Part shown: positions 8,868 to 48,412 of the stretch, piece after piece
Position numbering within the stretch: position 1 is the first letter of the stretch
How the letters are laid out: every line of letters starts with the position of its first letter
Virus record (IMG/VR): IMGVR_UViG_3300027963_000035
Coordinates: 1 to 64,000 of that record
Length of the DNA stretch: 64,000 nt
Direction: 5' to 3' (one strand)
The notes under the pieces: generated by a model
Databases searched by the model: none
Told to the model about the DNA's origin: nothing
Seen by the model: only the letters and a program-made list of their open reading frames with translations
Position numbers and translations under genes: made by a program

Positions 8868-10165
8868 AAGGAATAGGTCCTGTTAATTTTATTGGTATTG
8901 AAGAATCTTTAGAAAGAAGAGAAAATCTTAAAAAACAATTTTTGAGTCATGGAATAACAAATTTAATTCCTCATATATTTAAAAGGTATCATGAATATAA
9001 TTATAAGTTGAATGGAAATCTCGTTGATAAATTACATGAAAATAGTAAAGGCCCCATAACATCTCACATCAAAGCTCTAAAAAAATGGTATGACTCTACA
9101 AAAGAAGATTATACATTTTTTTGTGAAGATGATCTTTCATTAGAACCTGTGTCTTATTGGAACTTTACATGGGAAGAGTTTATCGATAGTCTTCCAAATA
9201 ATTGGGAGTGCGTTCAATTATCTTGGATACGCCCAAATAATGTCGATGTAGAATTTAGACAAAGACTAGCGGATGATTGGGGTGCAGCGGCATATTTGAT
9301 AAAAAGAGAGTATGCTAAAAAGATAATAGACAGTTATTATGTCAATGAAAATGAATTTAATCTGGACATAAATAATAATTTAATCCCCATTGTAGAAAAC
9401 ATAGTTTTTTCTGGGTTGGGTACAGTCTATAATATTCCAATATTTGTAGAAGACGTAAAAAATGTAAAATCAACATATCTTGGTAAAGATCCTACAGAAA
9501 TAAATGGACAGGGAGAATATCACTGGGATTCTTATAATTGGATAATTAATTGGTGGAAGAATAAGGGTCAATATATCAATCTTAATGATATGATTAAAAA
9601 AATTCCTCATATTTATGATAAGCCTCAGTTTGGAGAAAATTGGTTCACATACGCCAAACTATACAGAGATATGGTTCTTAGTTCATCCTCGGGCAGTCGA
9701 TTTGTTGAAGTTGGGTCTTGGAAGGGAAAATCTTCTAGCTTTATGGCTGTGGAAATTGCAAATTCAAATAAGAATATAGAATTTTATTGTGTTGATACTT
9801 GGATGGGAAGCTCGGAGCACAAGGAAATAAAAGAAATAGACTCTTTATATGAAACCTTTATCCAGAATATGAAACCACTGGAAGGGTATTACATTCCAAT
9901 TAAAAAACCTTCTATTGAAGCCGCAAATCAATTTCAAGATCATTCTTTGGACTTCGTGTTTATAGATGCATCTCATGAATATGAGGATGTTAAAAATGAT
10001 ATAAAGGCTTGGCTTCCAAAAGTAAAGAAAAATGGAATACTAGCTGGTCACGATTATTACACTGGTGAACAAAACTATCATCCTGGTGTAAAAAAGGCTG
10101 TCCATGAATGTTTAAATAACTTTATAACTTATGATGATTGTTTTGTATATAAAAATAATTTATAA
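8846..10165 (+). CDS. Glycosyltransferase family 25-like domain fused to a class I (Methyltransf_24-like) methyltransferase; no in-frame ATG start
   Basis: The frame is open from 8846, and the GT25-like N-motif (VNFIGIEESLERRENL) lies upstream of the track start 8942. It also has FFCEDD (DxD-like) and WGAAAYLI, then VEVGSWKGKSS, DFVFIDASH and LAGHDY. Confidence 0.7.
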   Translation, partial: KKKNNKLKGIGPVNFIGIEESLERRENLKKQFLSHGITNLIPHIFKRYHEYNYKLNGNLVDKLHENSKGPITSHIKALKKWYDSTKEDYTFFCEDDLSLEPVSYWNFTWEEFIDSLPNNWECVQLSWIRPNNVDVEFRQRLADDWGAAAYLIKREYAKKIIDSYYVNENEFNLDINNNLIPIVENIVFSGLGTVYNIPIFVEDVKNVKSTYLGKDPTEINGQGEYHWDSYNWIINWWKNKGQYINLNDMIKKIPHIYDKPQFGENWFTYAKLYRDMVLSSSSGSRFVEVGSWKGKSSSFMAVEIANSNKNIEFYCVDTWMGSSEHKEIKEIDSLYETFIQNMKPLEGYYIPIKKPSIEAANQFQDHSLDFVFIDASHEYEDVKNDIKAWLPKVKKNGILAGHDYYTGEQNYHPGVKKAVHECLNNFITYDDCFVYKNNL

Positions 10166-18212: not shown

Positions 18213-18887
18213 ATGAATGATGCGATTATAATAAGCGATATTCATTTAGGCAGTGATGTCTGTCAAGCTAAAAAATTGATAAGTTTTTTTGTTACGATTG
18301 AGGATGGAACGAATCCTACAAAATCTATTATTTTAAATGGAGATTTATTCGATAGTTGGGACTTTAGAAAATTAAAGAAAAGTCACTGGAGGGTTTTATC
18401 TTACATAAGAAAACTTTCAAAAAAAGTTAATATAATTTGGGTAGCAGGAAATCATGACGGGCCAGCAGAAGTTATATCTCATTTATTAGGAGTGGAATTT
18501 TTAGAAGAATATATTCTTTATAGTGGAGATAAAAAGATACTTGTTCTCCATGGAGACCGATTCGATAGCGTGATATCCAATCAACCAATGTTAGTTTACT
18601 TTGCTGATAAAATTTATAAATTGATACAAAAAATAGATAAAAGTTTTTATCTTGCAAAGCTTGCAAAAAAAAGTAGTAAAACTTTTATGAGAAATGCTGA
18701 GATCATAGAAAAAAAGTCTATTGAACATATGAAGAAAATAGGCTGCAATGTTGTTTGTTGCGGACATGTGCATTATGCAAACTCTAAACCCCACACAGGT
18801 TATTATAATAGCGGAAGTTGGACGGAATTACCTTGCAATTATTTGACTGTTAAAAATGGTGTTATAAATCTCTATAATTATTTTTAA
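18213..18887 (+). CDS. Metallophosphoesterase, UDP-2,3-diacylglucosamine hydrolase (LpxH/YbbF)-like
   Basis: ISDIHLG, LNGDLFD, GNHD, HGDRFD, CGHVH and NSGSW. Confidence 0.85.
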   Translation: MNDAIIISDIHLGSDVCQAKKLISFFVTIEDGTNPTKSIILNGDLFDSWDFRKLKKSHWRVLSYIRKLSKKVNIIWVAGNHDGPAEVISHLLGVEFLEEYILYSGDKKILVLHGDRFDSVISNQPMLVYFADKIYKLIQKIDKSFYLAKLAKKSSKTFMRNAEIIEKKSIEHMKKIGCNVVCCGHVHYANSKPHTGYYNSGSWTELPCNYLTVKNGVINLYNYF

Positions 18888-23394: not shown

Positions 23395-26202
23395 TTATCC
23401 GAGGAATCCTGGTCCGTTTATTGCCTGTTTATTTGTGTATGTTTTTATTAATCCTTCTGTGCCGTATTCACCTGCCCTGGTGTCGATGTTTGATATTGTG
23501 CTGTCTATTGCCATGGCGTGGCCCCCATGACCCCCACCCGCTATAGGCCCGGCTAAATCCATCAAGTTTATTTCGCTGTTTATTATTGTTGCCTTTCCTC
23601 CAATTCCGCCCTTCTGATCTTCGGCAAACCAGTCACCGTGCGGAAGGCCTCCTTTAGATTCTATTTCTTCCACCACACTATCCAATATAAATATTGTTCC
23701 TCCATGTCTTCCAAAACCACTATTCTCGCTCGACAACGGCCTTCCCCCGTTTGAATATATTGTGTTGATATTGCATCCTAATATGATGGCATCTCCCCCA
23801 TCCCCTGCAGGATCTCCTCCTTGACCTGGATTTAGATTGATTTCTTTTATTGTGGAATTTATGCCGGTGAATACACCTCCACGTCCGTTTCCCGTCCAGT
23901 ATGGCTCAGAGGCCGCACCATCACCTCCCGTTAAACTAATGGCCGACACAAGTGCGTTGTTTAACCTTATTTCTCCTCCATTGCCCGCTCCTAAAGTGGC
24001 ATCTGAATCGCCCCCGTTTGAATTTATGTTTAATATGCTAACTTCTCCGTATGTTAATATATCGATATTTCTTCCATTGGTTGATGTTGTTATTGCCACA
24101 TCTTCGTCGTAGTCCCATACTGCGTCCCGTCCATTGAAAATTATATTGCCCATGGCTGAAGCCGGTTTAAATTTGGCCGGCAGTTTCCATGTCCCAACAA
24201 GTTCAGATGGACCGTATTGGTTATTTGTAGGATATACGCTTATATTGTTGGGCCCCGATGTAAAAGTTAAGTACGCCAGACCTTTTTTGGATGTGCTCCC
24301 TTCGGCCCACTCTACAATGTAGACTCCTTGCAAACTAGTATTTGAGAATGCATTCGAATTGTTAAGTAAAAATTTATTCTCTAGATTGGTGGCCCCAATA
24401 AAACGTATTCCGCCACCTCCTACATTCGGAGTTCCATCTGTTGCGAATCCATCCGAGAGCAAGTTTGCGCCTCCCAATTCGGTGGCATATTGAAGATCTT
24501 CTTCTGATATTATTACTTCTTTCCATGGCGATCCATCTGCGTTGGCATTATTTCCTCTTAACGCTATATTGTTTGGCCACTCTGTGGCTTCCCCGTGATT
24601 TCTGCCTGGTCCAGCGTCTGCGATCCAGACATCGTCTTGGGGATACAAGGCCTTAACATCTATCAGATAATTCTTGGGAGTGTCAAAATTCCACAGAAAG
24701 CTGGCTGTGTGTAATCCTACCGTGGATCCAAAATCATCCGGGGAACTGGGCGTGAACGTACTTGTGTAGACTGCGGCTTCGTTGAATATTCTTATTCCGC
24801 TTATGTATCCGTCAAAAAAATCGCCATTATCGTAATCGTAGCCTATATCTAATCCGCATTCATAGTCGAAGTATTCGACGTCGACTCCTCCATGAACCCC
24901 AAAAGCATATCCTCCAGTAAAATTATATGTTGATTCTAAATTTCCATTTAAGTATATCTTAAACACTCCTCCATTTGCAACCATTGCAAAATGAGTCCAT
25001 TCATTTAACTCTATGTTGGAGAAGGTATTTCCTACTGAGGAGGCTACACCGGCGTTCGTCCTAGAAACAGAAATTACATTATTAGTGCCATATGCTGACA
25101 ACCCCAAAGAATCTCTTGTGCAGATATTTACCTTCCATAATGGATGAGTTTGTGAATTAGATCCTTGATTAAACAAGTTGCTCAGAAGTGTGTAGCTTCC
25201 ACTTGTTTCGCTTTTCATATAGAACCAAAATTCCACAGTAAAAGTTTCCTGTATGTTTGCTCCTTGCACAGGAAGAACATTTAAGTAATCTGTTGATCCA
25301 TTGAAACTAGCACATTTTACCCCGTCTACGGTTGTTAATTTTGGAACCAAATGATACGCAGTCACAAATCCCTTTTGAATTGTGTTATATGGACTTTGTG
25401 GTGTGGATATGTCATTATTGTTATTTCCACTATTTGAGTCTACGTATATCACTCCATCATAATTTTTCGAATAATCATTGAAAACTGTGTTTTCTGATAT
25501 TGTTCCCGTGTTATACGAATAGTCGTTGAAAACTGTGTTTTCTGGTGTTGTTCCTGTGTTATATGAATAATTGTTGAAAATCACATTTAATGTTGTTGCG
25601 CATTCGTCGCCGCAATATTGTATTAAATTTTGTTCATTGGTTGAATGATCATTGAATACAATCGAACCAATATAAATACCTCCATAATTACGACTATAAT
25701 CATTGAATGTGATATGGGCAAGGTAGAGACCCGCTGACAACCTGCTATGATCATTGAATACGACCTCTGTGTCCCATTCGTCTCCATCATTTAATGTTGA
25801 TTCTGCAAGTGAATAGTCATTGAATGTGACTTTTCCATGAATATAAAAATCGCCTGCGATAGAATAATCATTGAAGACTGCATTCCCGGTTATGGTGGGG
25901 AGAAGGCCTGCGGTCGGGGACGCAGCATAACTATGATTATTGAAGGTCGCAGTTCCAAGAACAATCACCGACGTTTGAAAAGGTTTATAGGCCCCGCTGG
26001 GCTCTTTTTCCGAGTTGTTTGTCAGATTGTTGACAGTGGGCGCACTTCCTGAATTACTTGTCAGCCGTTCGTATATTTCAACATCATCACTGCTTGTTGG
26101 AAGCTGGGTTGCGGGGGTAGAGAAAGAATCATCAAGCCACCAGTTTCCCAGCGTTGACCAGTCTTCGTTTCCAACGGCGTTGTTATAATAAAGAGTTGCC
26201 AT
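23395..26202 (-). CDS. Tail fibre/adhesin: beta-helix (FNDYS repeats), LamG domain and Gly-rich C-terminus
   Basis: Start reassigned to MATLYYNN (26202), just after the upstream gene. It has FNDxSxN repeats and FTVEFWF...WTHFA...DGYISGIRI (LamG). Confidence 0.8.
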   Translation of the reverse strand: MATLYYNNAVGNEDWSTLGNWWLDDSFSTPATQLPTSSDDVEIYERLTSNSGSAPTVNNLTNNSEKEPSGAYKPFQTSVIVLGTATFNNHSYAASPTAGLLPTITGNAVFNDYSIAGDFYIHGKVTFNDYSLAESTLNDGDEWDTEVVFNDHSRLSAGLYLAHITFNDYSRNYGGIYIGSIVFNDHSTNEQNLIQYCGDECATTLNVIFNNYSYNTGTTPENTVFNDYSYNTGTISENTVFNDYSKNYDGVIYVDSNSGNNNNDISTPQSPYNTIQKGFVTAYHLVPKLTTVDGVKCASFNGSTDYLNVLPVQGANIQETFTVEFWFYMKSETSGSYTLLSNLFNQGSNSQTHPLWKVNICTRDSLGLSAYGTNNVISVSRTNAGVASSVGNTFSNIELNEWTHFAMVANGGVFKIYLNGNLESTYNFTGGYAFGVHGGVDVEYFDYECGLDIGYDYDNGDFFDGYISGIRIFNEAAVYTSTFTPSSPDDFGSTVGLHTASFLWNFDTPKNYLIDVKALYPQDDVWIADAGPGRNHGEATEWPNNIALRGNNANADGSPWKEVIISEEDLQYATELGGANLLSDGFATDGTPNVGGGGIRFIGATNLENKFLLNNSNAFSNTSLQGVYIVEWAEGSTSKKGLAYLTFTSGPNNISVYPTNNQYGPSELVGTWKLPAKFKPASAMGNIIFNGRDAVWDYDEDVAITTSTNGRNIDILTYGEVSILNINSNGGDSDATLGAGNGGEIRLNNALVSAISLTGGDGAASEPYWTGNGRGGVFTGINSTIKEINLNPGQGGDPAGDGGDAIILGCNINTIYSNGGRPLSSENSGFGRHGGTIFILDSVVEEIESKGGLPHGDWFAEDQKGGIGGKATIINSEINLMDLAGPIAGGGHGGHAMAIDSTISNIDTRAGEYGTEGLIKTYTNKQAINGPGFLG

Positions 26203-26209
26203 AAAATAA

Positions 26210-26665
26210 TTAGTATCCCGGGATAAAGGCCACAACGTCCCACTTGTCTCTGCCGGCATGATAAGTGGCCGCAAACAGATCGGTCTTTCCTGTGACTTCG
26301 CTAACCGGAAGAGGATCTGTTGCTCCGTCTGGTAGTGCGAATTTATTGCCTAATGTTAGTGTATATCCCGCATCTATCCAATTCATTCTTATCTTGATGG
26401 TTTTTCCGTCGACGGCACTGCCCGTCCAGGTAGGGTTGCTTATCGTCACGTTGTTGTCCACATCTACGTCGAATATGTCGCCGGAACTGGCGTTTATTGA
26501 TATCGATGTGTCAGTGCCTAGGTCTACCACTGTAGGCTTATAGAGAGATGCAATATCTCCTAATTTTATTTTTTCTGTTAGTGTTCCTGCGGCATTTGTT
26601 GCTGGCACAACTGCATCTTTATTTGCTGAGCCCAATGGTAATTCTGATATTTTTATATCTGCCAT
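26210..26665 (-). CDS. Tail/fibre-associated structural protein
   Basis: 151 aa with an MADIKISELP N-terminus typical of phage fibre proteins and an AAGGA Shine-Dalgarno. Confidence 0.65.
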   Translation of the reverse strand: MADIKISELPLGSANKDAVVPATNAAGTLTEKIKLGDIASLYKPTVVDLGTDTSISINASSGDIFDVDVDNNVTISNPTWTGSAVDGKTIKIRMNWIDAGYTLTLGNKFALPDGATDPLPVSEVTGKTDLFAATYHAGRDKWDVVAFIPGY

Positions 26666-26874
26666 TTTAATTCCTTTTTATTAAATAACATATATATCTA
26701 TACATAATTAAGGAAAATATGTTCAGTAATCTAAAATTAGAACCCACGGCGATGGAGACCCAGCTTCAACGTTAACAACTACGGTGAAGACTGTGATTTG
26801 CCCCAGAACCGCTGATTTTTTTTAAAAACTTTAAATAAAAAAAAGAAAAGTGCAAAATTACCCGTAAAAATAGG

Positions 26875-26933
26875 CTCAAAAAAATTTTTGGATAGGGGCT
26901 TGCGAGGGTTCAAGGAGTCGCTATACTGAGCCC
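26875..26933 (+). promoter_or_regulatory. Sigma70-type promoter resembling rrn P1
   Basis: A/T tract (UP-like) at about 26877-26889, -35 TTGCGA 26900-26905, 16-bp spacer, -10 TATACT 26922-26927 and GC-rich discriminator GAGCCC. Confidence 0.7.
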
Positions 26934-26941
26934 ATCAACGA

Positions 26942-26984
26942 CGTCGGAAACGATGAGTTGAAGAAAAAACTTGCTCTTTGACAA
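26942..26984 (+). promoter_or_regulatory. boxB-like GNRA hairpin plus boxA (TGCTCTTTGACA) antitermination leader
   Basis: cgtcg-GAAA-cgatg at 26942-26955. TGCTCTTTGACA at 26972-26983 matches the E. coli rrn boxA TGCTCTTTAACA at 11 of 12 positions. Confidence 0.7.
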
Positions 26985-27801
26985 TTTGAAACAAAGTCCT
27001 TGCTAACACTGAAAGGTGTTGGCGAAAAAATTAAGCCACAAGGACAATCGATGGAAACTGAAAAGTTTCCACGATCTCAAAAGCCTAATCCGTAAAAAGA
27101 AGGGCTGGGATATTACTAGTTTGCTGCAAAGCAAAAAGAGGTAGTATACGATAAAGAAGAAACCTTGAACTAAAAAATCAAGGGGGATTTTTGTCGGAAC
27201 TTTGTGGTGGGCTTCGGTAAGAGGATGTTTGACTTGTATAAATTTAAAAATTAGAAATAATTTTTAAAGACAAGAAGTCAGAACTAACGACGTTGAGGAA
27301 TTTGGGAACGCATTAGTCTTGAGAAAGACTATCCCACTGAAATCAAATGTAGCGGTCCTCTTAGTATCACGGGATAAGTTAAGGAGACAGGCAGTGTCTT
27401 TAACAACCCCTCTATTTTATTATGGAGCAACCGTGGCGACGGTGAATAGTGATATTGAGTCTGGGTGCTGAAAAGCAAAAACAACCCTAGAAACGACGTG
27501 GTGGCTCAAACACGTTAAACAAATGAGAGTGTTGTGGTGAATGTTCGGTACGAGTAAATCCAGATACTGCTAGATCAACCACTAAAGGGGTCACTGGTAA
27601 CAGGTGATATTTTGTGGGTAGTTTAGCTTTAAAAGAAATATGAGTGGCGAACGGACTACGACTGTCACATATAGGTAAAACGGTGGATGAAAAACATCCA
27701 ATGGTAGAGGAGACCTATAAGAACTGCTGTTAAAGTGACGGACTATTTTATGCGATTCATTCCTCTGTATATGAGTGGATCGTAAACTTCTTCTATCTAC
27801 T

Positions 27802-27843
27802 AAAGCCGGTTGAAACTAGAAATGGTTTCAACCGGCTTTTTTT
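27802..27843 (+). terminator. Rho-independent terminator ending the ncRNA
   Basis: 15-bp perfect stem aaagccggttgaaac / gtttcaaccggcttt followed by a T run. Confidence 0.92.
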
Positions 27844-27867
27844 GTTTATATTTTACTATTTTAGTTT

Positions 27868-28080
27868 GTGGAAGAGTATTTTTACATAAGAAGTGTTTTA
27901 AAATATTGGAACTTGGAATATCCATATACTCCAATGGGCAATGTATTAGATATCAATAAAGATATAAAATCATTAATAAAAAATTGCTATAGTTTAAATT
28001 GGACTCCACAAAGGTGTTGTTCAAGAATATATGAGATGTTCTTTTCTTCGGGAAGTCTCACCCTTAAAAAAGATGAATAA
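27868..28080 (+). CDS. Hypothetical protein (70 aa)
   Basis: ORF fills the gap between the terminator and the next gene. Confidence 0.45.
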   Translation: MEEYFYIRSVLKYWNLEYPYTPMGNVLDINKDIKSLIKNCYSLNWTPQRCCSRIYEMFFSSGSLTLKKDE

Positions 28081-28143
28081 AACTTAAAATTCAACATATT
28101 GTATTATATAAGGTATATAAGGTATATACAATAAAGGATCAAT

Positions 28144-30558
28144 ATGTTGAACATCCAGAACACAATGTCTAGGCTAAATTCTGATCACGCAGAAATAACT
28201 GCAATGGCACCGGATCTGAATTATTTCACAGATGAAGTTGAAAACTACATAAGTTGTCAATGTAATACTAGTAGAGTGAACGGCATTGCCCAACATGATG
28301 ATGGTGATATGCTTTTGGTCGGAGAAGGGTTTGTAGATGGCACGCCAGACAATAACTGGGAATGTTGCTACTCAGAGGTGGTAAAAATAAGCCAAAACGG
28401 TATCCAAGATGAAACATTTCCCGCTACAAGATTTAGTGATTCTGTCTATACTGTTGCCGTCCAACCTAATGGAAAAATATTATTAGGTGGTTGGTTCTAC
28501 AATCATTCTGTAGACGGATCTATTACAACACAAACTTCACACTATATTGCCAAATTTGATTCAAATGGTGTCTTTGACGCCAGTTTTGATTCTACATTAA
28601 ATGGCGCAATAGATGGAGTTGTGAATAAAATTCTAGCCTTAAGTGACAATACTTCGGTAGTGGCGGGCCGGTTCACTTCTAGAATTATGATCCTAAATGA
28701 TGATGGAACTCAAGTCCCGATAGAAGCAAACTCTAACTTTGACGCAGTATATGATGTTGCAATAGACTCTGAGGAAAGATTAATTGCAGTAGGATATAAT
28801 TTAGAAAGAAAACATATTATCAGATATGTATATGATAGTGGAACTTCAACATGGATTGAAGATGATACATTTATTCCTCCTGTTTTCAATAACGATAGTT
28901 TCTTGAAAACAGTTGCGGTTCAAGATGATAATAAGATAATAGTGGGCGGAAATTTTAGTGTAATCTCAGATACTGGAATAACCACAACACTATATAGCAT
29001 ATGTAGAATAAATGAAAATGGCTATATAGATACATCTTTTGGTTTAGACGCACAAGGAGCACAAAATCCTGGAATTGCTTACTACATCCCAGCTGGATAT
29101 TATGGCGAGGAAAATTTCTATCCTCCCTATATAACAAAGATTGAACTTTTAGATGATGGAAAAATGATTGTTGGTGGTAATTTCAATGCTTTCGGATATC
29201 CCGGAGACACACCATCAGTTAGAAATAACATCTGTAAAATTAATTCAGATGGATCACTGGACAGTTCTTTTGGCGGAGCAAATGATTTCTATGGAAATAA
29301 TCGATCTAGTAATCAAATAGATAATAATTCATACTACCCATCAGTAAATGATATATATCAAGTATCTTCTGGCGATATATGGGTTGGTGGATATTTTATT
29401 AAACCAAAAAGATACTATGTTAAATTAAATTCATCGGGAACGCCAGGTTCCTTTGGATCCGATTATATGCCATTAGTAACTGGTATTGATGATGGCGGAT
29501 TTGATATGTATGATGGCGGTAATTTCTTTAATACCAATCTAACTCAAATCTATGATGATATTAAAGAAGATGAAGTAGATTATGATCTTTCCATTCCTTC
29601 CACTCACACCCAGATGCCCAATGAAGTTTCTTTTGGTCCTCAATGGGCAGCAGGAGGTGCTTCAAAGAATATTTATTCACCAATATATTTCGACAGCACA
29701 ATAGAAGACGGAACAGATTATTTCGGAGAAGGAAGTCAATATTTCACTTCCATGTATCCTGGTATGTTTGTTTTAGTGGCCACAAATATAGATATAACTC
29801 AGTTTAGTATAACTGGAGATATCGGCGCAGACGGAGGAACTAGTTATTCAGTGGATGTTTTGTCAATAACATCTAGATCGAATGATTACACCGTATTTGC
29901 TAAGACCGTAGAAGCAGCACAAGAGGAAGAGGAAGTGGCGCCCACTCATTTAATAATTGTTCCGGGTAATAGTGATGGAATAACTCATCTTTATGACGAA
30001 TCTACAAATTATGACGATCACGCAGTCGATGGAATAACCGGTATAAAAGAAATATATGTAATAGTAATGTCTAAGCTTGATGGAAGTTTTATGACAACAT
30101 CTGAGATGGGAGATATAGCACAAAAATTCTTAGATACCATAACCGAAGAAGCCACCGTCACTACTACCACTACTACTGAGCCTTTTATTGTTGAAGCGGA
30201 AGAACCTAAATCTTGTGGTAGTACTATTTGCAACATTAATATAAGATGTTTGAAACATAATAAAGATTTAAAAATAGGATCCACTTTGAATTCTTGTGGA
30301 TGTTCTACTTGGAAATTTATTGATCCAGGTACTAAGTTAAAAGGAGGAGTACTAAGCGGATCATCAAAGAAGGGAGCATGGATTCCTGCATCAACAGTCT
30401 GTTCGCAGATGCTTTATTCGTATCCTTCAAAGGTTGTTTCTGCTGCACCGGTGACAACCACCACGACGGCCCCAACCACAACAGTGGCTCCCACAACCAC
30501 AACAGTGGCTCCCACAACCACAACAGTGGCTCCCACAACCACAACAGTGGCTCCCTGA
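28144..30558 (+). CDS. Beta-propeller (delta-60/DUF5122-like repeat) protein with Cys-rich and Thr-rich C-terminus
   Basis: Repeats VAVQPNGKILLGG, AVQDDNKIIVGGNF and DGKMIVGGNF...DGSLDSSF; TTTTVAP tail. Confidence 0.8.
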   Translation: MLNIQNTMSRLNSDHAEITAMAPDLNYFTDEVENYISCQCNTSRVNGIAQHDDGDMLLVGEGFVDGTPDNNWECCYSEVVKISQNGIQDETFPATRFSDSVYTVAVQPNGKILLGGWFYNHSVDGSITTQTSHYIAKFDSNGVFDASFDSTLNGAIDGVVNKILALSDNTSVVAGRFTSRIMILNDDGTQVPIEANSNFDAVYDVAIDSEERLIAVGYNLERKHIIRYVYDSGTSTWIEDDTFIPPVFNNDSFLKTVAVQDDNKIIVGGNFSVISDTGITTTLYSICRINENGYIDTSFGLDAQGAQNPGIAYYIPAGYYGEENFYPPYITKIELLDDGKMIVGGNFNAFGYPGDTPSVRNNICKINSDGSLDSSFGGANDFYGNNRSSNQIDNNSYYPSVNDIYQVSSGDIWVGGYFIKPKRYYVKLNSSGTPGSFGSDYMPLVTGIDDGGFDMYDGGNFFNTNLTQIYDDIKEDEVDYDLSIPSTHTQMPNEVSFGPQWAAGGASKNIYSPIYFDSTIEDGTDYFGEGSQYFTSMYPGMFVLVATNIDITQFSITGDIGADGGTSYSVDVLSITSRSNDYTVFAKTVEAAQEEEEVAPTHLIIVPGNSDGITHLYDESTNYDDHAVDGITGIKEIYVIVMSKLDGSFMTTSEMGDIAQKFLDTITEEATVTTTTTTEPFIVEAEEPKSCGSTICNINIRCLKHNKDLKIGSTLNSCGCSTWKFIDPGTKLKGGVLSGSSKKGAWIPASTVCSQMLYSYPSKVVSAAPVTTTTTAPTTTVAPTTTTVAPTTTTVAPTTTTVAP
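30469..30555 (+). repeat. 21-bp coding tandem repeat (PTTTTVA) x~4
   Basis: cccacaaccacaacagtggct: three exact copies and one degenerate copy. Confidence 0.9.
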
Positions 30559-30619: not shown

Positions 30620-31057
30620 ATGTCAGACTCTAATTTAGAACTCAGTCCAATTCTCAAAAACTTAGCCTCAGAAGGTGGATTAGATACAGCCATATTAAAC
30701 GGAAACAGTATCCAAAGAACTTTAAACATGGTTGACTTTGATGGAAAAAAAATAGTTTCTAAAAAAGACGGAGATGTAATAACAGTTTCTGATGGTGGAG
30801 AATACTTGGCCCAAATTATTCCAAGTGAATTTGTTGAAGCAAGAGGAGATTGTTCTGACTCGGAAACCCTTTGCGATAGTGTTTGTGTTAATTTAATGAC
30901 TGATGAGAGTAATTGCGGAAGTTGTGGTAACGAGTGCCCAGTAGGATATACCTGTGTAAGCGGGGTTTGCATTGCACCAACACCAACACCAACACCAACT
31001 CGCACAGTTACTCCAACTCCAACAAGAACTCCAACCCCAACACCAACTCGTGCGTAA
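30620..31057 (+). CDS. Protein with a Stig1-like Cys-rich module and Pro-Thr tail
   Basis: CVNLMTDESNCGSCGNECPVGYTCVSGVC followed by (PT)n. Confidence 0.7.
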   Translation: MSDSNLELSPILKNLASEGGLDTAILNGNSIQRTLNMVDFDGKKIVSKKDGDVITVSDGGEYLAQIIPSEFVEARGDCSDSETLCDSVCVNLMTDESNCGSCGNECPVGYTCVSGVCIAPTPTPTPTRTVTPTPTRTPTPTPTRA

Positions 31058-32541: not shown

Positions 32542-32609
32542 AAGAGGAAAAGTATTTAAACTTAAATTTTGTCATTTGTACTCCTATACATTAAACAATA
32601 GGAGTGCAA

Positions 32610-33332
32610 ATGACAAGAAAGAAAACAAGTCCCGTCTGGATTTTAAATAAAAAAGAAATTCAAGAGCTTTTAAATAATTCTAATAGTTTCGTTGAAGTTT
32701 TAGAAAAAATAGGATTAGATGCACATAGCGGAAATCATAGAACTCTTAAAGAAAGAATAAAACAAGATTCGCTTGATATTAAAGAGCTGGAAAAGAGGAG
32801 GAAAGATAGGATAGGACAGTTTTCGATTAAAAATAAAATACCTTTAGATGAAATAATGGTAGAGAATTCAAGTTATGGAACAAACCATCTCAAAAAAAGA
32901 ATATTAGATGAAAAAATGTTAGATTATGCTTGTGAAAAATGTAAAAACAATGGTAATTGGCTAGGCAATAAGTTGGTCCTACAACTAGAACATAAAAATG
33001 GAAATTCTAAAGATCACAGGCTGGATAATCTTTGCTTTTTATGTCCAAACTGTCACACACAAACATCAACTTATGCCGGTAAGAATAGCAGCTTAAAAAA
33101 AAGTAGAATATGTATTGAATGTAAGGGCCCAACTAAAGGTAAGGGAACTAAGTGTAGAAGGTGTGCTTCTCAAAAACAACCAAAAAAGTTTTTTGTTACA
33201 AAAGAAGAGCTTCAAAAGTTAGTTGAAATATATCCTCTTACAACAATAGGAAGAAAATTTGGAGTGTGTGGCAACTCAATAAAGAAAAGATGCAGATCTT
33301 TCGGAATAGAAAATAGTAGAAAGAAAAAATAA
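32610..33332 (+). CDS. HNH homing endonuclease with flanking HTH/Zn modules
   Basis: CEKC...LQLEHKNGNSKDHRLDNLCFLCPNCH; AGGAG Shine-Dalgarno at 32600-32604. Confidence 0.9.
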   Translation: MTRKKTSPVWILNKKEIQELLNNSNSFVEVLEKIGLDAHSGNHRTLKERIKQDSLDIKELEKRRKDRIGQFSIKNKIPLDEIMVENSSYGTNHLKKRILDEKMLDYACEKCKNNGNWLGNKLVLQLEHKNGNSKDHRLDNLCFLCPNCHTQTSTYAGKNSSLKKSRICIECKGPTKGKGTKCRRCASQKQPKKFFVTKEELQKLVEIYPLTTIGRKFGVCGNSIKKRCRSFGIENSRKKK

Positions 33333-47625: not shown

Positions 47626-48412
47626 TTCTCTTTGCAATCTTGGACACATACTCTAAAGAAGGGGTGTGGTCCATTTTAGATAAAAGATTTATTGGATTAT
47701 CGGATGCCATGGAGAAATTCATATCATTACTTTTATATAGTTTTTTATTAAACATGGGATTAACTCCATGCCTATAGCTTATTATATCTTTTAATTGACT
47801 CTCTATTAGATTTCCTTCGATATCATTACTGGCTAATATTTTACTGACTTTATGTTTGCACAAAGTCGCAAATAATGCCACTTTATCAACTTGATATTTG
47901 TTTGGATCCAATCCCACCATTTGACATAATATTGCCATATCCTTAAAGAAATTTAATGATAATTCATTAAAAACAAACACTTCACCCAGATTAAGCCATT
48001 TATCCATTTCATTTTTTGATAGTCTAATTAATTTGGCATATCTTTTATTATAAACAAAGTCAGGATCAATAGAAAATATAAATTGTTTATCTTGTATTTT
48101 TATATCTTTTTGTATGACTGTATCGGGATCTAGTACGGTCACGGGTAAACTTAGTATGTTGTTCTCCATAAGAGTGTAAAGAGAACCCCATTTATTTAAT
48201 TTGAGTATACCTGTTTCTCTGCCTATATTTTTATGAATATATTTATTGGCATGTGTTGAAAGATTTTTATTATTTTTAAGATACTCTTTGTCTGCCTGAG
48301 CCACCGATATATATAGATTGTCCTCTAGACCCAATACCTTGAAGCTTTCTATCAATAATTCTAGTTGCCAATTATGGTAGTAAGAATCTTCTACCGAGAC
48401 AAAATAATTCAT
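47609..48412 (-). CDS. GT-A glycosyltransferase resembling plant GT95/GT96 (Hyp-arabinosyl/Ser-galactosyl transferases)
   Basis: FVSVEDSYYHNWQLELLIESF, LNKWG and VLDPD parallel the recalled SGT1/HPAT motifs FSVEC-x-x-YFDWQ...HSF, NKP and ILDAD. Confidence 0.6.
   Translation of the reverse strand: MNYFVSVEDSYYHNWQLELLIESFKVLGLEDNLYISVAQADKEYLKNNKNLSTHANKYIHKNIGRETGILKLNKWGSLYTLMENNILSLPVTVLDPDTVIQKDIKIQDKQFIFSIDPDFVYNKRYAKLIRLSKNEMDKWLNLGEVFVFNELSLNFFKDMAILCQMVGLDPNKYQVDKVALFATLCKHKVSKILASNDIEGNLIESQLKDIISYRHGVNPMFNKKLYKSNDMNFSMASDNPINLLSKMDHTPSLEYVSKIAKRIINRI

Follow-up and report, generated by a model that had tools for sequence, protein, structure and literature searches.

A structured non-coding RNA gene in a huge freshwater phage with a promoter and predicted leader resembling those of bacterial ribosomal RNA operons

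Described boxA leaders and large phage RNAs

Bacterial rrn operons are transcribed from P1/P2 promoters through a leader with boxB, boxA and boxC elements, on which a NusB-NusE-NusA-NusG-SuhB antitermination and chaperone complex assembles, and in B. subtilis these operons are described as beginning with a small hairpin directly followed by a boxA-like element (PMC13753749). Outside rRNA operons, rrn-type boxA elements acting without a phage N protein are described at the head of the suhB 5' UTR and of CRISPR arrays, chromosomal loci of gammaproteobacteria of which the latter are, like the RNA analyzed here, untranslated (PMC5725501; Stringer et al. 2020, as cited in PMC13753749). In a different form, phage lambda uses host Nus factors through its nut sites together with N protein. 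Separately, GOLLD and ROOL are large, intricately folded non-coding RNAs of phages and prophages with unknown function (PMC12286853), for which, to our knowledge, an rrn-type leader has not been described.

The locus examined here lies in the first 64 kb (referred to as the window, 64,000 nucleotides) of a 251-kb IMG/VR viral contig from a freshwater lake, which has 36% G+C, is only about 50% complete and carries in the window a portal gene, a major head protein gene and tail-fibre-like genes. The stretch 26666–28143 has no ORF and lies between a 151-aa gene on the minus strand and an 804-aa beta-propeller gene on the plus strand. Within it, positions 26838–27846 of the plus strand form a self-contained cassette for a non-coding RNA of about 860 nt. 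Compared with an rrn operon, the order of promoter, small hairpin and boxA (predicted to be single-stranded), the boxA letters and the distance from the -10 to boxA (44 nt, against 40 nt in E. coli rrsH P2 and 46 nt in a Planctomycetia 16S leader) are the same; the product is a long, highly folded untranslated RNA from which the leader is absent, and a strong intrinsic terminator ends the gene. On the other hand, the cargo has no similarity to rRNA, there is only one boxA with no spacer copy, no boxC is present, and instead of a leader-trailer helix for RNase III the boundary of the RNA lies directly after boxA. The locus is not a lambda-type nut site, since in nut sites boxA precedes boxB, the loop is a GNRA-like pentaloop bound by N and the target is mRNA operons, whereas here the hairpin comes first, its purine-rich loop is a plain GAAA tetraloop and boxA has the rrn form rather than the weaker lambda form. 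Like GOLLD, the RNA is seen in lake sequence data, but it matches neither the GOLLD nor the ROOL Rfam model, even at E<=10, and was found in only four closely related sequences. The mechanism that we propose is known, while its bearer, a huge-phage gene for an ornate RNA, is new as far as we could find, and so is the boundary at the edge of boxA, if it is indeed a cut.

Sequence and conservation of the promoter, hairpin and boxA

The original prediction, made from the sequence alone, listed an rrn P1-like promoter, a GNRA hairpin and a boxA matching that of E. coli rrn at 11 of 12 positions, together with a second boxA-like string further downstream, and we found every one of these sequence features at its place. 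An A7T5 tract, CAAAAAAATTTTTGG, occupies 26877–26891 and, with the predicted start at A26934 or T26935, spans about -57 to -46, the position of the distal UP subsite (UP consensus AAAWWTWTTTT). It is followed by the -35 hexamer TTGCGA (26900–26905), a G+C-rich 16-bp spacer (26906–26921), the -10 hexamer TATACT (26922–26927) and the G+C-rich discriminator GAGCCC (26928–26933). For comparison, rrsH P1 of E. coli has a 16-bp spacer, GCGCCTCC, a G+C-rich discriminator and an A/T-rich upstream region. A hairpin at 26935–26961, in the boxB position at the predicted 5' terminus, has the stems UCAAC/GUUGA and CGUCG/CGAUG and a GAAA loop in the minimum free energy structures, and ten nucleotides later boxA has the core TGCTCTTTGACA (26972–26983) followed by ATTT (to 26987). 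The boxA is on the sense strand, 38 nt after the predicted start and 1 nt before the accumulating RNA. It is predicted to be largely unpaired in the nascent leader, where it is free in the minimum free energy structures with a mean unpaired probability of 0.5–0.58. The sequence after boxA, AUUUGAAACAAAGUCC, contains no GU-rich boxC-like element, although we regard boxC as dispensable.

To assess whether these matches could be fortuitous, we compared their frequency with expectation. The promoter hexamers alone are not above chance, as five promoter-like sites were found in 2.6 kb against 7.1 expected, and the 11-nt consensus GYTCTTTRANA occurs 4 times in the window against 1.2 expected. In contrast, the 16-mer TGCTCTTTRACAATTT, which lies about 50 nt into the predicted transcript, is unique in the window at 0 mismatches, and even at up to 2 mismatches only 0.35 sites are expected. 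The boxA fits the published consensus forms GYTCTTTAANA (10/11) and UGCUCUUUAACA (11/12) except for G at position 8, which is also seen in the B. subtilis element (PMC5725501, PMC13753749). The resemblance is stronger than originally predicted, because the E. coli rrsH leader has TGCTCTTTAACAATTT, lying 40 nt after the P2 -10 and behind a hairpin, which gives 15/16 identity with 26972–26987.

To trace the element in bacterial genomes, we scanned about 185,000 species genomes for the 22-mer and obtained one hit, in a Planctomycetia MAG and not next to rRNA. In that same genome, however, the 16S leader reads TTGACA-17-TAGAAT, then a hairpin, then TTGCTCTTTGACAATTTG, which is 18/18 identical with 26971–26988 and lies 46 nt after the -10 and about 180 nt before the 16S gene. 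In two other Planctomycetota genomes the same 18-mer lies in the 16S–23S spacer, between the tRNAs and the 23S gene. By sequence the phage element is therefore a bona fide rrn-type boxA in the rrn-type arrangement. Keeping in mind that only 4 of 301 sampled Planctomycetota genomes carry the exact 18-mer and that the sample was confined to this phylum, we draw no conclusion about the host, although boxA letters might help to predict hosts.

Three further copies of the RNA allowed a comparative test: a roughly 98% copy in a 323-kb contig (L004/L035/L074, hereafter L004), a 93% copy (L041) and an 88% copy of the 3' half only (L077). In L041 homology begins near 26838, at an A-rich block (26838–26874) ending in GAAAAGTGCAAAATTACCCGTAAAAAT, and ends at the terminator; its neighbours are different genes, and L077 has yet another downstream neighbour, so that the promoter-leader-RNA-terminator unit behaves as a cassette. 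Within 26838–26990 of L041 the 16-bp spacer has 6 substitutions at constant length, against 12 in the other 137 positions (Fisher p=0.0044), while there are no changes across 26922–26969, which covers the -10, the discriminator, the hairpin and most of the linker. The A/T tract is identical in L004 and L041, and the -35 reads TTGCGG in L041. The boxA is identical in L004 and in L041 changes in its core only from C to T, at the Y position of the consensus GYTCTTTAANA (PMC5725501). The one change in L004, C26951T, turns the loop-closing G-C pair of the hairpin into G-U. Although it rests on only three leader-bearing sequences at 93% identity or more, and thus has limited power, this is the signature of a working sigma-70 promoter and a constrained leader.

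The second boxA-like string, TGTCTTTAACAA at 27395–27406, is present but is not a boxA. It is the 3' strand of a hairpin with a pairing probability of 0.99 and reads CTTTAGCAA in L041 and TATATTTGACAA in L077. Both keep the helix, with compensatory changes at 27380/27402 and 27384/27398, and both lose positions that define boxA. The string is a chance resemblance.

The structured RNA and its 5' end

The plus strand 26930–27845 folds with a z-score of -17, against -5.6 for the minus strand, whereas an unrelated stretch of 722 nt (8868–9589), which looked ORF-free to a crude gene caller, has no structure signal (z of -0.4 and +0.5). Against the predicted structure, 56 of 71 substitutions at paired positions keep the pair, and nine pairs show double compensatory changes. 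The intrinsic terminator (27802–27846), a 17-bp stem followed by a T7 run, is invariant, loop included, in all four homologues. No Rfam family reached its gathering score in the window, and nothing relevant, including any known self-cleaving ribozyme family, appeared at E<=10 in 26600–28200.

To find relatives, we first searched public phage records with blastn, which gave no match. A synteny search with the adjacent 151-aa protein gave 31 loci, of which only the near-identical 323-kb contig carries the RNA; an ORF-free gap in another of these loci (L029) is unrelated. Five exact-pattern scans with RNA-body patterns, four in viral contigs and one in metagenome contigs, returned only L004, L041 and the partial L077, since one further candidate (L042) and ten other loci were chance hits, and no homologue below 88% identity was found.

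The RNA is represented in nature, as eight lake metatranscriptome runs hold 44–67% of the sampled words of 26700–27900. When contigs from four of those runs were placed on 25400–29400, each run had a single, 100%-identical contig on the RNA and nothing on the flanking genes. Only two of the eight runs hold any of the major head gene, with shares of 0.22 and 0.06. The RNA, made at a high level, therefore appears far better represented than a late message that is assumed to be usually abundant, although differences in RNA stability, or RNA carried in particles, could contribute.

Three of the four contigs, from independent metatranscriptomes, start at exactly 26984, the base after the boxA core, while the fourth starts at 27017 behind an adapter; none extends upstream, and the contigs reach 27808. 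They have no internal breaks at sites where known strains differ, so strain bubbles are an unlikely cause of the break, and no RNA run has a word share above that expected for 26984–27808. The accumulating RNA (26984–27846) therefore lacks the 50-nt leader. This is what a processed rRNA-like precursor predicts, but it is also what a start at 26984 predicts, and assembled contigs cannot tell the two apart. Thus a transcription start elsewhere, which the original prediction had named as refuting it, is not excluded. The boundary reads ACA|AUUU, is single-stranded and has U at +2, resembling RNase E/G sites, and is most likely an endonucleolytic processing site.

Regarding the polymerase, the phage has two promoter-like motif classes of its own: TATATA-type motifs before structural genes in the first 140 kb, and about 55 copies of GTTTCCCTCCGGTACGGT on the minus strand of 146–247 kb, often only a few nucleotides before start codons. 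The RNA gene has neither, but a -35/-10 promoter of the host sigma-70 type. No T7-like or multisubunit RNA polymerase, no sigma-70 region 2 and no S21 was found in the roughly half-complete record. Transcription by unmodified host polymerase, the enzyme that Nus factors modify, is the simplest reading.

Proposed mechanism and boxA in other phage contigs

Cumulatively, these data lead us to favor, with moderate confidence, a model in which the gene borrows the front end of a bacterial rRNA operon. In this view, host sigma-70 RNA polymerase starts near 26934 and the nascent leader forms the GAAA hairpin and exposes boxA, which would load NusB-S10 onto the polymerase together with NusA and NusG. 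Elongation would become fast and resistant to pausing and Rho, and the 5' end would stay tethered to the polymerase, helping the long multi-domain RNA to fold during transcription. The intrinsic terminator would then stop the modified polymerase, and the leader would be cut off between A26983 and A26984, leaving the mature RNA to accumulate. Our analysis demonstrates the sequence elements, their selective conservation, the identity of boxA with genuine rrn boxA, and the existence, abundance, 5' end and structure of the RNA, whereas the start site, Nus binding and loading, the effect on transcription and folding, and the nuclease are inferred.

The original interpretation, that the phage co-opts the host rRNA transcription machinery to make a long untranslated RNA at a high level and Rho-resistant, and that this RNA could act as a Nus-factor sponge suppressing host rRNA synthesis, is supported only in part. 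The rrn-type architecture, the authentic boxA, the selective conservation, the sigma-70-type promoter and the high level of the RNA agree with it. Rho protection, however, is probably not the main benefit, because the RNA has 15.7% C and 23.5% G, only 5% of its 78-nt windows have C>G, against 26–31% in the neighbouring genes, and it is tightly folded, all of which make it an intrinsically poor Rho substrate. The chaperone and speed functions of the rrn complex (reviewed in PMC8632103 and PMC10250234) fit better. The mature RNA carries no accessible boxA and so cannot be the sponge; only an excised leader could be.

Several alternatives are conceivable but less likely. Transcription might start at 26984, with the conserved stretch 26928–26983 serving as DNA-level promoter or regulatory sequence for a phage-modified polymerase and only coincidentally resembling an rrn leader. 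The contig ends, the absence of the leader from any contig and the phage's own non-standard promoter classes would agree with this. Yet no sigma-70, TATATA-type or GGTACGGT-type element lies at the right distance upstream of 26984, a sigma-54 or extended -10 promoter was considered by eye and rejected, and the motif does not recur elsewhere in the genome as a promoter would. Moreover, both the 18/18 identity with genuine rrn boxA and the pattern of conserved hexamers and variable spacer 60–80 nt upstream would have to be accidents, and the same 17-mer heads tRNA arrays in other phages downstream of ordinary promoters. We consider equally unlikely that the leader is transcribed but its boxA-like segment works not through Nus factors but as a processing or stability signal, either as part of a weak CUUUG/CAAAG hairpin presenting the cleavage site or as the site of a phage protein, or that an unrecognized ribozyme at the 5' end of the RNA cleaves itself. 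The boundary does lie exactly at the 3' edge of boxA, within the loop of a predicted weak hairpin, and the RNA hardly needs Rho protection, but identity to authentic boxA that extends into flanking letters is not needed for a mere cleavage site, the one core change in L041 is the one that the boxA consensus allows, and no known ribozyme family matches.

Still less likely is that the point of the leader is to soak up NusB and S10 and starve host rRNA synthesis. The boxA is authentic and the RNA is made at a very high level, and one excised 50-nt leader would be produced per mature RNA, which RNA-seq size selection would miss; however, the accumulating RNA lacks this boxA, the internal boxA-like string is buried in a helix, no evidence exists that an excised leader is stable, and boxA at the head of phage tRNA arrays points to a cis role. 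The least likely reading is an inert relic of a captured host rrn leader. Although the 18/18 identity would fit a recent capture, only boxA matches, the promoter, hairpin and linker being unrelated in sequence to the rrn leaders of E. coli rrsH and the Planctomycetia genome; none of the about 185,000 species genomes carries the 22-mer in an rrn context, and the leader is at least as conserved as the RNA body. An improbable but not excluded combination is that the leader acts in cis, giving the RNA the speed and folding help of the host's rRNA transcription machine, while excised hairpin-boxA leaders, made at a very high rate, titrate NusB and S10 in trans and shut down host ribosome synthesis, with rrn-type boxA being a general phage device for all long untranslated transcripts: ornate RNAs, tRNA arrays and tmRNA.

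Considering that boxA/Nus antitermination is thought of as a device of rRNA operons, of a few host genes and CRISPR arrays and, in a different form, of lambda N, this locus would add an N-independent, rrn-type leader on a phage gene for a large ornate RNA. It also gives a concrete handle for expressing and studying such RNAs, with a promoter, predicted leader, mature 5' end and terminator, and suggests that co-transcriptional folding help from the Nus complex may matter for giant RNAs in general.

To explore whether boxA accompanies other untranslated phage transcripts, we scanned IMG/VR for the 17-mer TTGYTCTTTGACAATTT and obtained 84 stretches in 70 unique contexts. In 13 contexts tRNA or tmRNA genes follow on the same strand within 3 kb (104 genes, the first often 3–14 nt after boxA), and a further 33 lie upstream on the same strand, so that within 3 kb 137 such genes are co-oriented against 1 on the opposite strand. 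Sixteen of the loci contain no rRNA, and are therefore not stray bacterial rrn operons. Several sites sit just downstream of consensus promoters, the 17-mer often lying just downstream of a sigma-70-type promoter, and most of the arrays lack the 5' hairpin. We found no paper describing this arrangement, which looks like a general phage use of rrn-type boxA for long untranslated RNA and independently supports a cis function at the present locus. The regions downstream of boxA in these contigs fold only modestly, with z from 0 to -3.7, and no second ornate RNA was found among them. Within the genome analyzed here but outside the window, a boxA-like GTTGTTCTTTGAAAATTT lies between a GGTACGGT promoter and an intron-bearing tRNA-Leu(UAA) gene, in a tRNA cassette that is absent from the relative.

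boxA and boxA-like elements elsewhere

Outside the phage record itself, the exact rrn-type boxA 17-mer TTGYTCTTTGACAATTT was found at the head of, or inside, phage tRNA/tmRNA arrays in eleven IMG/VR contigs (L118, L123, L126, L138, L152, L155, L168, L173, L174, L175 and L176). The element was always co-oriented, with 137 same-strand genes against 1 on the opposite strand, and no rRNA lies nearby. We did not find this arrangement described in the literature searched. Within the phage's own contig, G000:C1, a second boxA-like element, GTTGTTCTTTGAAAATTT, lies on the minus strand at 213742-213760 (locus L040), in the leader between a GGTACGGT promoter and the intron-bearing tRNA-Leu gene. In the 323-kb relative the whole tRNA cassette is missing behind the same promoter. 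A 22-nt identical match to the phage boxA plus flank, TTGTTCTTTGACAATTTGAAAC, is also present in a Planctomycetia MAG (CAVRDP010000006.1, L086:2517-2538), where it is followed by a G+C-rich hairpin. No rRNA occurs within 5 kb.

Promoter-like motifs and intron-bearing tRNA genes of the phage

On the minus strand of G000:C1, in the region 146000-247500, which is outside the window, about 55 copies of a roughly 18-nt motif, GTTTCCCTCCGGTACGGT, lie upstream of genes, some only 9 nt before the ATG, and a partial copy occurs at window position 48133. This looks like a phage-specific promoter class, yet no phage polymerase or sigma factor was found in the record. A different motif, a triple TATATAagg repeat, lies at window 28090-28130, just upstream of the 804-aa gene, and TATATA-type motifs precede many structural genes in the first 140 kb, where they look like a late-promoter class. 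Further, four group I introns, all above the Rfam cut-off, were identified on the minus strand of G000:C1 at 144338-144530, 208810-209003, 213504-213691 and 227827-228020, each interrupting a tRNA gene of the phage. One of these is tRNA-Leu(UAA), an arrangement classic for cyanobacteria.

Surroundings of the RNA cassette

When window 26838-27846 was compared with L041 and L077, two loci carrying homologues of the RNA, the cassette was found to have different neighboring genes in each lineage. In L041 it follows the homologue of window gene 18213-18887, and the 804-aa gene is inverted, while in L077 it is followed by the homologue of 30620-31057. At its 3' end, the terminator hairpin (window 27802-27839), loop included, is invariant in all four homologues even though the RNA body diverges by up to 12%, which is more constraint than a plain terminator needs. 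On the other side, a G+C-richer non-coding stretch at window 26720-26815, lying between the 151-aa gene and the cassette and ending in a T8 run, is present in the 323-kb relative but not in L041. Close downstream of the RNA cassette, at window 30620-31057 and 32604-33332, lie a small protein with a cysteine-rich Stig1-like domain and an HNH endonuclease gene.
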